A stretch of DNA of 64,000 nucleotides from Vicugna vicugna (lineage: Eukaryota). The DNA lies in contig MU062951.1 in the NCBI GenBank assembly GCA_013265495.1, forward strand, positions 806,001 to 870,000. Reading direction: 5' to 3'. Below are positions 45,180-50,000 of the stretch, in pieces. The position numbers and the translations under genes were made by a program. A model generated the notes under the pieces. The model did no database searches. It had not been told where the DNA came from and worked only from the letters and a program-made list of their open reading frames with translations. Every line of letters starts with the position of its first letter. Position 1 is the first letter of the stretch.

Positions 45180-46030
45180 CTTGAGCGGACTTCGGTTCCC
45201 ACCATGCCTTGCGCCAGGGCGGGGGGGGGGGGGGATTTGTCGCCGGGGGGCGGGGGGGGGGCGGGAGCCGTGTTTCCCGACAGGCCATGCGCGGGACTGC
45301 TACGGGTCCTCGGAGGAACCGGCGCCGCGGGGCCTTGTGGGGGTTGCAGTTCCCGGCGGCGAGGGCGGGCCTCGGCTTCCCGGCGGGCTGCGCGGCGGCC
45401 GGCGGTTGTCGGCGGGGCAGTCCGGCGGGCAGCGGCGGCGGTTCCGGCTGCGGCACAGCGGCGGACGAGTGGACGGGCCGGGTCAAGTGGGCCGGGCGGG
45501 ATGCGGAGCCGCCGCCGCCTGCTGAGAGTCTGAGCATCGGCCTGGCCGCGCCCCCCGCCCAAGCCGCTGCGGTCCGAGCGTTCCGAGCGTTCCGAGCGCG
45601 GGCCGGGCCCCGCGCCGCCGCCACCCCCGCTGCCCCCCGCTCCTCCCCCGCCCCGGCCGGCCCAGCGCTCATGCGGGCCGAGCCCCGCCCCCCGCCCGCC
45701 GCCGGAGCCCGCGCCCGCCCGCACACGTCCGCACCATGCTCAAGTGCATCCCGTTGTGGCGCTGCAACCGGCACGTGGAGTCGGTGGACAAGCGGCACTG
45801 CTCGCTGCAGGCCGTGCCCGAGGAGATCTATCGCTACAGCCGCAGCCTGGAGGAGCTACTCCTCGACGCCAACCAGCTGCGCGAGCTGCCCAAGGTGAGC
45901 GGCCTTCGGACCTGTCCCCCGTCCAGCCCTCGCCCGCGGTCGGCAGGGTTGGCCCCGCCGCGACCACTCGCTTGTCCGAACCCTCAGCAGGCGCTGGCCC
46001 GGGCGGGACACCGCAGCCTCCAGCCGGCCC
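45180..46030 (+). promoter_or_regulatory. SCRIB: CpG island / SCRIB promoter and 5' UTR
   Basis: Very CpG-dense, spans the ATG at 45736, with long G-tracts at 45217-45265. Confidence 0.8.
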
Positions 46031-47097
46031 TGCTGGTTCTTACTGGCTAGAGCCCCACCCCTGCAGGCCCCGCCCTCCTCACCCATCGCTGGCGCTGGCA
46101 CCAGGTGGCTAGGGTCATCAGGTGCCCGCCTTGGGGCGGGGATGGTCACAGCCTAGAGGAGTTGCAGATTGAAAACCGTAGGGGCAGGCAGATGGTATTG
46201 GGGTGGAAGGGGAACCTGGCGTGGCTGGTGGATGCGAACTTGCTGGATCGCTCTAGAGGTGGGGAACCCAGCCTACTGTCTGGTCTGTCTTCCTCCTCCT
46301 CCTGGTGCTGGGTTGGGAGCAGGGGAAGCCTTCTTAAGGTTCTTGTCTGTGACAAGTTTGTGTCCCGTTCACCTCTAGTGTCTTGTTTCTTCCCGAGCAG
46401 CTTGTTTTTTTCCTTCTAAAGACACTTGGGAGAGGAGGTTAAAGGAAGCAGATCACAAAAGGATTTCCTTCTTGGAGATGGGGTGCTAAGTGGCCCAGTG
46501 CCTGGGGGCTGCATACCACAAAGGGCGTGGCTCCACTCTGGGCTTGGACCAGGGCTGCTCATGGTCATTTCCAGTTCCCACAGATTGACTGTAGCCCCTG
46601 CACACCCTCAGCACCACGAGTACCTGTGGTTCTCTGTTGTTTTCATTGTACATTTTTTTTGGTACTTGCCAAGTTCTTGTCACAGGCTCAGGCTGGGCCG
46701 GTTTCTGGGGTGCAGTAGCAAAAACCAGCACAGGTCCTGGAGGGCTCACTTGCTGGGTGGGTGGAAAGCAAGAAACAGGGTCTCGTGGGGTCAGAAAAAA
46801 GAGGTGATTTCTCCGCTAAGGCCTGAATACGTAAGGTCAGTTACATGGCAGCATTGTGGCAGGGGTCACGTCTGAGGTAACGTAAACGGACCAGGTGACA
46901 GAAGTCAGGGAGTCGGAAACCAAAGGGTGTGCCCGCAAGTTTTTGTTTCTTTGCTTTTCTTACTGCAGACCGGGGTGGTGGGACAGAACCAGGGTTCCTG
47001 TGTGGCCTGGAGCAGGCAGAGGACCAGGGAGGCCCTGCTGCCTGCTCTTCACCCCTGACCTCGCCCCCCCCCCAACAGCCCTTCTTTCGGTTGCTAA
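45671..47097 (+). CDS. Upstream overlapping ORF in SCRIB mRNA (oSCRIB-like), 80 aa after splicing (45671-45894 plus 47079-47097)
   Basis: ATG 65 nt before the SCRIB ATG, out of frame: [27 protein letters not shown]..., stop TAA at 47095-47097. Translation not demonstrated. Confidence 0.45.
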
Positions 47098-50000
47098 ACC
47101 TGAGGAAGCTGGGTCTGAGTGACAACGAGATCCAGCGCCTGCCCCCAGAGGTGGCCAACTTCATGCAGCTGGTGGAGCTGGATGTGTCCCGGAACGGTGT
47201 GGAGCCTGGGGCGGGTCTGGGGGCGAGTCCGAGGGCAGCAGGAAGGGCTTTAGCTCCTGGAGGCTGTGGGTTCTCTCCATGGTGACCCCTCTTCCGTCGC
47301 AGACATCCCTGAGATCCCTGAGAGCATTAAGTTCTGCAAAGCCCTGGAGATTGCAGACTTCAGTGGGAACCCCTTGTCCAGGTAGGTGTGGCCACAGCAG
47401 GGGTGGAGGTGGGATGAGGGGTCCTCAGCCCTGGCCTGGGCATCTGAGGTCCCCCCTTCCTCTGGCGTAGGCTCCCTGAAGGCTTCACTCAGCTCCGAAG
47501 CCTGGCTCATCTGGCCCTGAACGATGTATCCCTGCAGGCGCTTCCTGGAGACGTGGGCAAGTAAGTGCCCCCTTGGGTGGGGAGCAGAGCACCACCTGCA
47601 CCTCTCACCTCACGCCCCGCCCTGACCTCTTTCAGCCTTGCCAACCTGGTGACCCTGGAGCTCCGGGAGAACTTGCTCAAGTCCTTGCCTGCGTGAGTGA
47701 GCTCAGCCCCTCTCACAGCCAGCTTGGGCTGTGGCCCCAATGACCATGCTGTGCAGCCATGACAGAACCGGCTCTGTTCCTTCTGCAGGTCCCTGTCTTT
47801 CCTGGTCAAGCTGGAACAGCTGGATCTGGGAGGCAACGATCTGGAAGTGCTGGTGTGGAGAGGGTGGGGCCATCGTGGTTGGGGAAGGGCCAGGCAGGGC
47901 AGGTGAGCCTTGGCCGTCACTTTGTCCTTATCTGTTCTTGCAGCCTGACACTCTGGGGGCCCTGCCCAACCTGCGTGAGCTGTGGCTGGACCGGAACCAG
48001 CTGTCGGCACTGCCTCCGGTGAGTGAGGGTGTGGCTCCCCCCGCCTCACACCTATTGGTTCCCTGACCCTCTGCGCCCACCCTCAGGAGCTCGGGAACCT
48101 GCGGCGCCTGGTGTGCCTGGATGTGTCGGAGAACCGGCTGGAGGCACTGCCTGCGGAGCTCGGCGGGCTGGTGCTGCTTACTGACCTGCTGCTTTCACAG
48201 AACTTGCTGCAGCGGCTTCCTGACGGCATCGGTTAGTGCTGGTCTGGGTGCTGGGAGGGGAGTGGCTGGTGGTAAAACTGGGCCTGGAAGAGGTTCCTGG
48301 GGCAGGACCCTTATTCTGCCAGGCTGTCGGGGAAATCCCTGAGGATGGGAAAGCCAATCTGAGGCCGGGGTGGGGTGACCAGTGCTGTGTCTGAGGAGCC
48401 GAGGCAGCTTGTGGAGGTGATTGGGGATGGTGAGCTCGCGAGGGCACGAAGGTGGGGCCCAGAAGGGCCCGGCGTCTGGGGATTGACAACGATGTCAGCA
48501 GCTAGGGCATGTGGTCAGGTTTGCAACAGGATGGCAGGGAGGGGTGAGCATGGGTCTGTGCATTTCGGGGGCTGGAGGCAGGTGAGGGGCAGGCTGTTTC
48601 CACTGCCTGGGTGGCGGGGCTTCACGCCATGAGTCGTGTTGCCATATCTTCCCAACACCAGGTCAGCTGAAGCAGCTGTCCATCCTGAAGGTGGACCAGA
48701 ACCGTCTGTGCGAGGTGACCGAGGCCATCGGGGACTGTGAGAACCTGTCTGAGCTGATCCTCACGGAGAACCTGCTGACGGTGGGCTCGGTTTCACAGTT
48801 AGCGCAGGAGATGAGAGGATGGGGGGCACCCACAGCACCTAGAGCAAGGGTGGGGATGCTGCTGTTCGGTGGGAGCTAGGTATCTGCGGGGATGCATCCT
48901 CCTTCTTACGCTCCTGGCAGGCTGCGGCCGCTCTCTGACCCTCCCTGCTCTCGGCCAGGCTCTGCCCCACTCCTTGGGGAAGCTGACCAAGCTGACCAAC
49001 CTCAACGTGGACCGGAACCGCCTGGAGGTGCTGCCCCCTGAGATTGGAGGCTGTGTGGCACTCAGTGTCCTCTCCCTGAGGGACAACCGGCTGGCTGTCC
49101 TGCCGCCCGAGCTCGCCCGCACGGCCGAGCTGCACGTGCTGGACGTGGCCGGGAACCGGTGAGCGCGCGCCCGCCCTGCCGCGGTCTGCGGAGCTGACGG
49201 CGCCTGTGCGGCCCCTCGGCTGACCGCGCCGCTGGCCTGCAGGCTGCAGAGTCTGCCGTTCGCGCTCACGCACCTTAACCTGAAGGCCCTGTGGCTGGCT
49301 GAGAACCAGGCGCAGCCCATGCTCCGCTTCCAGACTGAGGATGATGCCCAGACGGGCGAGAAGGTGCTCACCTGCTATCTGCTGCCCCAGCAGCCCCCAC
49401 CCAGCCTTGGTAGGTCCAGGTGGGGGCCACCCAGGGTGGGCACAGCCTCGGGCGACGCTGGGGCTCCCTCTGACACGTGCCTCCGCAGAGGACCCGGGGC
49501 AGCGGAGCAGCCCTTCTGAGAGCTGGAGTGACGCCCCGCTCAGCCGCGTCAGCGTCATCCAGTTCCTGGAGGCCCCTGCAGGCGACGAGGATGCCGAGGA
49601 AGCCGCCACAGAGAAACGGGTATGGGTGGGTGCGGTGCCTGGACTGGCTGCCTTCCCACCCCAGCGGACCCTTGCCCTGCCCCACCCCTCACCCCTGTGC
49701 CCGCTGCAGGGGCTGCAGCGTCGGGCTACGCCTCACCCCAGCGAACTCAAGGTGATGAAGAGGGGTGTGGAGCGTCGGAACGAAGCCGCCTCCTGCAGTC
49801 CTGACCCCGGGCCGCCCTCGCCCTCACCCCCGCCCTCAGAGGAGGTGCCTTTGGGGACCCAAGGGCCATCAGAGGGACTCCCGCCTTGCAGGCTTTCTCC
49901 ACTCCGGATCCCTGGGCTGGGGGCAGGGTTCAGATGCCCAATGTGGGCATAGGGGTTGGGGGGCTCAGGGCCGACTGCCCCATGTCCTCCCGCAGAGCAG

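Follow-up and report, generated by a model that had tools for sequence, protein, structure and literature searches.

The leader of human SCRIB holds two upstream open reading frames (uORFs), of which the first, uSCRIB, encodes 15 amino acids (aa), MRSRRRRRSPRFLRV, and precedes the second, oSCRIB (PMC8448870). Human oSCRIB, which encodes 120 aa, shares 287 of 363 nt with SCRIB; its AUG hence lies at -76, in frame +2 (PMC8448870, Supplementary Table 1). Its start is printed as ATGCGGACTGAGCCCCGCC (PMC8448870) and the peptide begins with MRTEPRPP (PMC8448870; Nomura & Dohmae, Commun Biol 2021). Here, the corresponding 5' end of SCRIB is described in a 64,000-nt stretch of Vicugna vicugna DNA (contig MU062951.1), referred to as the window. 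All coordinates are those of the + strand of this window, and frames +1 and +2 are counted relative to SCRIB.

The human oSCRIB peptide has been detected by two unique mass spectrometry peptides, one of which is AAQAFFPAAELAQAGPER, and by ribosome profiling (Ribo-seq) (PMC8448870). According to the same authors, the oSCRIB AUG has a weak context, with no purine at -3, and they propose that it forms a ribosomal roadblock, past which ribosomes get by leaky scanning (PMC8448870). In their wheat-germ assay, changing this AUG to AGG or CCC lifted SCRIB-sfGFP from 100 to 287 and 324, respectively (PMC8448870). In a 2025 preprint by the same authors, the length of oSCRIB was found to be variable, with 35 aa in mouse and 120 aa in human, the human form being an extension (10.1101/2025.07.27.667088). 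This study also describes a guinea pig SCRIB that is fused with a partial oSCRIB by a frameshift between both start codons, and human indel variants that shift or fuse oSCRIB (10.1101/2025.07.27.667088). Both the cis-acting brake model and the instability of the oSCRIB frame have already been published, and the frame switch described below is a new instance.

For most translated upstream and overlapping ORFs, including oSCRIB, it is not settled whether the peptide itself matters or only the trapping of ribosomes. A natural test of this question is offered by a lineage in which the start codon, the weak context and the overlap are retained but the frame is swapped. SCRIB dosage matters for cell polarity and cancer, which gives its regulation some medical interest. 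In the window, the mammalian two-uORF leader of SCRIB is present, and the probable explanation of its altered frame is that a 10-nt insertion in this lineage moved the weak oSCRIB start from frame +2 to frame +1, with the brake on SCRIB being kept.

The overlapping reading frame of the window

The window contains the 5' end of a mammalian SCRIB on the + strand (Table 1), within a CpG island at 45100-46100 with 69-84% G+C. Spliced over exons 1-3, SCRIB of the window encodes the same protein (MLKC...LPK/PFFRLLNL...) as eight other mammalian loci. The SCRIB start ATG (45736-45738) has a strong context, CGCACC-ATG-C, with A at -3. The upstream AUG (uAUG) at 45671-45673 lies 65 nt 5' of it, hence in frame +1, in the weak context GCGCTC-ATG-C, with C instead of a purine at -3 and C instead of G at +4. 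A preliminary description, made from the letters of the window, had placed this ATG in the third frame with a 65-nt spacing and an 80-codon ORF ending at TAA 47095-47097, and all these coordinates proved correct. It had also likened the start of the peptide, MRAEPRPP, to that of human oSCRIB, and the human sequence it gave agrees with the printed one.

On alignment, ATG 45671 proves orthologous to the oSCRIB start codon of human. It lies at the orthologous position between the same flanking bases, has a weak context 5' of the strong SCRIB context and is preceded by a uSCRIB-type uORF. Its ORF is out of frame, spans the SCRIB start, crosses the exon 1/2 junction and ends in the coding sequence (CDS) of SCRIB, and the MR(A/T)EPRPP start is common to both. 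The human form (UniProt C0HLS1) differs in its spacing of 76 nt, its frame +2 and its 120 codons, compared to 65 nt, frame +1 and 80 codons in the window. A frame +2 ORF with a peptide homologous to human oSCRIB was not found: only the first ~16 residues of the window peptide are homologous to oSCRIB, and residues 17-80 are unrelated. The remaining oSCRIB-homologous sequence of the window sits in frame +2, where no AUG is present. The human tryptic oSCRIB peptide corresponds to this +2-frame sequence and therefore +2 is the human frame. The stop of this human-type frame at TGA 47120-47122 was correctly identified in the preliminary description, although the same TGA, at CDS nt 203, also occurs in three other groups (F, G and H, see below). 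Among the sequences compared, an early +2 stop is a common non-primate state and not special to the window.

Comparison loci were collected by protein searches, using the peptide and the read-through ORF of exon 1 as queries, after which the encoding contigs were fetched, and by one metagenome scan (pattern uAUG...AUG, gap 20-50 nt). This resulted in ten further sequence groups (A-J) of Logan, ENA and JGI contigs, defined by sequence only, nine of which cover the uAUG (Table 1). Groups A and C are 94.6% identical, and the other pairs compared 72-87%. The window shares 75-81% identity in non-coding DNA with each compared group and has no close relative among them.

The +1-frame stop at CDS nt 178 is identical in position in all nine groups with exon 2, because the SCRIB Leu-Asn codons (CTR/TTR AAC) create the TAA. 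Since the +1 stop is fixed in this way, a shift from +2 to +1 cannot abolish the overlap. Accordingly placed, the stop gives the window uORF 80 codons, versus 70-92 in most non-primate groups.

Frame +1 is open over 690 nt in the window (45209-45898, + strand), from far 5' of the uAUG to the first intron bases. If transcripts reached that far upstream, an extra +1-frame ATG, at 45287, would open an ORF of 208 codons. This long opening is probably a mere consequence of the extreme G+C content.

Table 1 Features of the SCRIB 5' end in the window, and position, frame and length of the oSCRIB-type uORF in the sequence groups
Feature or group	Position or contigs	Strand	uAUG	Frame	Length and remarks
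Short Arg-rich uORF, uSCRIB orthologue	45501..45533	+			10 codons, stop TGA; matches human uSCRIB MRSRRRRRSPRFLRV
Most conserved leader block	45665..45689	+			GCGCTC-ATG-CGG plus GAGCCCCGCC; holds the weak-context uAUG
Overlapping uORF, part 1	45671..45894	+		+1	65 nt of leader and the whole 159-nt SCRIB exon 1
Window-specific 10-nt insertion CGCACACGTC	45720..45729	+			From alignments with nine other groups; placement ambiguous by 1 nt
SCRIB exon 1, coding part	45736..45894	+			53 codons (159 nt), donor AAG/GTGAGC
Overlapping uORF, last 19 nt, in exon 2	47079..47097	+		+1	Ends with TAA 47095-47097 (CDS nt 178); spliced uORF 65 + 159 + 19 nt, 80 codons
SCRIB exon 2	47079..47196	+			118 nt, acceptor CAACAG/CCC
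Frame +2 stop TGA	47120..47122	+		+2	SCRIB codons AGT GAC; CDS nt 203
SCRIB exon 3	47303..47382	+
Window			-65	+1	80 codons
Group A	L001-4		-55	+2	74 codons
Group B	L006		-55	+2	11 codons, TGA before SCRIB AUG
Group C	L007-12		-55	+2	74 codons
Group D	L015		-76	+2	70 codons
Group E	L016		-49	+2	At least 72 codons (contig ends)
Group F	L017-20		-55	+2	85 codons
Group G	L021		-76	+2	92 codons
Group H	L013/14				Contigs end before uAUG
Group I	L022		-76	+2	43 codons
Group J	L023-25		-76	+2	43 codons

A 10-nt insertion between both start codons

With the additional nucleotides CGCACACGTC, the uAUG and the SCRIB AUG are 65 instead of 55 nt apart, and the frame is +1 instead of +2. From the uAUG to ...GCGCCCGCC, the window is nearly identical to the groups with a 55-nt spacing; CGCACACGTC and then the invariant CGCACCATG follow. 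None of the nine other groups contains the 10 nt, nor does the human sequence given in PMC8448870. The most economical reading of these alignments is an insertion on the lineage of the window. A 1-nt error in the neighbouring C-runs had initially been suspected. However, the C-runs at 45683-45718 are base for base equal to those of other mammals and therefore a miscount of 1 nt is not the cause of the frame change. Without the 10 nt, the +2 ORF of the window would have 85 codons, as in group F. A clean tandem duplication was considered as origin of the insertion and rejected, as it has only CCGCAC in common with the bases after it, and a direct repeat was not reported.

In group B, GCCTGA replaces GCCGGA, leading to a stop after 11 codons and a short uORF without SCRIB overlap. 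Contig L005 carries the same exon 1 read-through ORF as L006 but comes from another sample, has AGG in place of ATG, and shows unrelated AT-rich sequence upstream of about -65. It may be a chimeric contig or contain an insertion.

Conservation of the leader

In the nine-group alignment from uSCRIB to the SCRIB AUG, 25% of the columns are invariant. The sole invariant runs of at least 8 nt are GCGCTCATGCGG and GAGCCCCGCC, which take in the uAUG with its weak context and the codons after it, and which both align gap-free in ten groups. In a 235-nt leader at 84% G+C, 0.47 ATGs are expected, and two or more occur in 8.5% of the shuffles. The presence of two leader ATGs alone is unremarkable; the evidence lies in their conservation. 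The predicted fold of the leader (-96.7 kcal/mol) showed nothing beyond composition when compared to shuffled sequences (z = -0.05), and an Rfam search of 45000-47500 returned no family.

The 10-codon uORF at 45501-45533, also noticed in the preliminary description, is real and orthologous to human uSCRIB, as it is a short Arg-rich uORF that lies 5' of oSCRIB and ends well before the SCRIB AUG. A uORF of this type, with 8-13 codons, is found at the aligned position in eight other groups (L001, L007, L015-L017 and L021-L023). Since it is short and ends 202 nt 5' of the SCRIB AUG, reinitiation is possible. The homologues are Arg-rich, e.g. MPGRRRVLRV, MRGRRRPLRV, MSGGRRLLRV and MRNRRLRI. Their register relative to SCRIB differs among the groups (0, +1 and +2), and the end ...CTGAGAGTCTGAG is largely conserved.

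Proposed mechanism

With the observed anatomy, orthology, insertion and conservation as a basis, and by analogy with the human in vitro experiments, we infer that the transcript includes 45671, that this AUG is used and that SCRIB is repressed by it. Ribosomes scanning from the cap would meet uSCRIB first, after which they could reinitiate. They would then arrive at the weak uAUG at 45671, where some of them would initiate and read 80 codons, past the SCRIB AUG and the exon 1/2 junction. These ribosomes would stop 177 nt 3' of the SCRIB AUG, would not return and would be lost for SCRIB. The remaining ribosomes would pass the weak uAUG by leaky scanning and start at the strong SCRIB AUG. Such a brake should work in either out-of-frame register. 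The insertion would preserve both the overlap and the length of the ORF, with residues 17-80 being replaced by unrelated sequence.

Generic out-of-frame overlapping uORFs, bypassed by leaky scanning, also combine a weak uAUG with a stop 3' of the main AUG and no reinitiation. There is no mechanistic difference from these, and the window would be one conserved example. The guinea pig fusion and the human indel variants are similar in that an indel between both start codons alters the register of the uAUG. In contrast to the window, they shift to frame 0, and the overlapping ORF is lost as an N-terminal extension of SCRIB. In the window, the other out-of-frame register is taken, the overlapping ORF persists and presumably the brake does too. 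The non-primate homologues (mouse and groups A-J) share the uAUG block and an ORF end that varies with synonymous SCRIB codons, but unlike the window all of them use frame +2, and group B now has an 11-codon, non-overlapping uORF.

If the insertion is real and fixed, it would be a natural separation-of-function allele, with oSCRIB abolished and the brake intact. Selection would then keep the brake and not the protein. That conservation of the uAUG reflects cis-regulation alone, the protein being dispensable, is a possibility we put forward tentatively. The general pattern contains a counter-signal: the uAUG is invariant and the ORF end highly variable, yet frame +2 is kept elsewhere and synonymous divergence in exon 1 is low.

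Some observations weigh against the proposed frame switch with a retained brake. Removal of the human leader gave 4778, versus 100 with the leader (PMC8448870, in vitro), indicating that the human repression in vitro comes mostly from the GC-rich leader and that the AUG contributes about 3-fold. The relatives are just 75-81% identical and therefore the insertion can neither be dated nor shown to be fixed. An independent assembly of the window species was not encountered, as the 104-aa exon 1 read-through ORF had no protein match above 84% identity. The 265-aa antisense leader ORF was likewise absent from the protein collection, and the metagenome scan gave a single contig of another species, with a leader identical to that of group C.

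Peptide or brake

A different explanation is that selection in most mammals acts on oSCRIB as a peptide, or at least on the first ~43 residues, and that the lineage of the window has lost a functional microprotein. We regard this as rather unlikely, despite a number of observations in its favour. The uAUG is in frame +2 in 9/9 other groups as well as in human, with spacings of 49, 55 and 76 nt and with GCGCTCATGCGG being invariant. The adjacent spacer between uSCRIB and the uAUG (136-201 nt) is free in its register, all three mod-3 classes being found among the groups. At third codon positions, SCRIB exon 1 diverges by 0.10, compared to 0.25 for exon 2 and 0.26 for exon 3; the first 200 nt of intron 1 diverge by 0.23. 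The synonymous divergence of exon 1 is 2.5-fold below that of exons 2-3, and 18/53 codons are variable in exon 1 versus 44/64 in exons 2-3 (Fisher p = 0.0002). The mass spectrometry detection of human oSCRIB fits a selected peptide as well.

However, groups B, D, I and J have +2-frame stops within exon 1, and group B has one before the SCRIB AUG as well. The ORF ends after 11, 43, 43, 70, 74, 74, 85 or 92 codons in the groups and, according to the cited papers, after 35 in mouse and 120 in human. A Pfam search with the overlapping peptides of frames +1 and +2 gave no credible match (best E = 0.26). The retention of frame +2 could also be helped by GCC-type repeats, which favour slippage by multiples of three. 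Moreover, it is mainly in codons 8-24, around a CACGTG motif, that synonymous divergence is low, and exon 1 has a G+C content at third positions of 0.91-1.00. Therefore, causes at the DNA level, at the RNA level or in composition fit equally.

SCRIB codons 8-20 (45757-45795) are near invariant at all three codon positions across eleven groups. The palindrome CACGTG, at 45772-45777, lies inside the near-invariant stretch, and the synonymous variation of exon 1 is concentrated in codons 25-53. The near-invariant codons could represent a DNA or RNA element, or dual coding.

The preliminary description had argued for a cis-acting brake on SCRIB over a conserved microprotein, which is the published model for human oSCRIB and not a new inference. 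At the window locus, its view that the overlap is retained and the peptide is not was borne out, and the locus is consistent with a brake that is kept and a peptide that is lost. Generalised, the claim is only partly supported: the variable ORF ends and the stops within exon 1 speak for it, but the preserved frame +2 and the low divergence of exon 1 do not. The tabulation of uAUG frame and ORF length over nine groups is divided in the same way, with a variable ORF end on the one hand and a frame that is constant outside the window on the other.

Possible artefact, rare allele or promoter element

It is also conceivable, though improbable, that the insertion is an assembly or consensus artefact in a region of 81-84% G+C, or a rare allele, and that the species normally has the 55-nt spacing and an 85-codon +2 oSCRIB. 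Among ten sequence groups and human, the window alone has the insertion, no independent copy was present in the protein collection or the metagenome scan, and assemblies are notoriously weak at GC-rich first exons. A search for relaxed constraint on the branch of the window found zero singleton changes in exon 1, so the sign that an old loss of frame +2 might leave is missing. This result is compatible with an insertion that is recent or spurious, or with a constraint that has nothing to do with the peptide. Against an artefact, the extra bases form a complex 10-mer and not a miscounted homopolymer or simple repeat, and the flanking C-runs agree with other mammals. The closest N run ends at 40622, about 5 kb away, and the other SCRIB exons of the window contain no frame breaks, which serves as a rough check of assembly quality.

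That the block at 45671 owes its conservation to a role as DNA in the CpG-island promoter (GC box, neighbouring palindromes), with an incidental and little translated ATG, is highly improbable: the invariant GAGCCCCGCC contains CCCCGCCCC, which we take to be an Sp1-type GC box, the block lies within an island of 80% G+C and two leader ATGs are not beyond chance, but two distinct mutations of the human AUG raise downstream translation, Ribo-seq and two unique peptides show that translation occurs, and none of the ten groups deviates in the ATG triplet or its weak context, in a leader that is otherwise mostly variable.

Other features of the window

In the related loci L001, L007, L015, L017, L021 and L022, ORFs matching RRM_1 precede the SCRIB start by 2-3 kb, which is consistent with a PUF60-like gene whose end lies just 5' of the SCRIB promoter, at ~43-44.5 kb in the window. 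Further upstream, masked N runs are present at a regular spacing of ~1569 nt between 10961 and 18601 (e.g. at 12597, 14166 and 15735), and this periodicity suggests a tandemly repeated coding or domain array.

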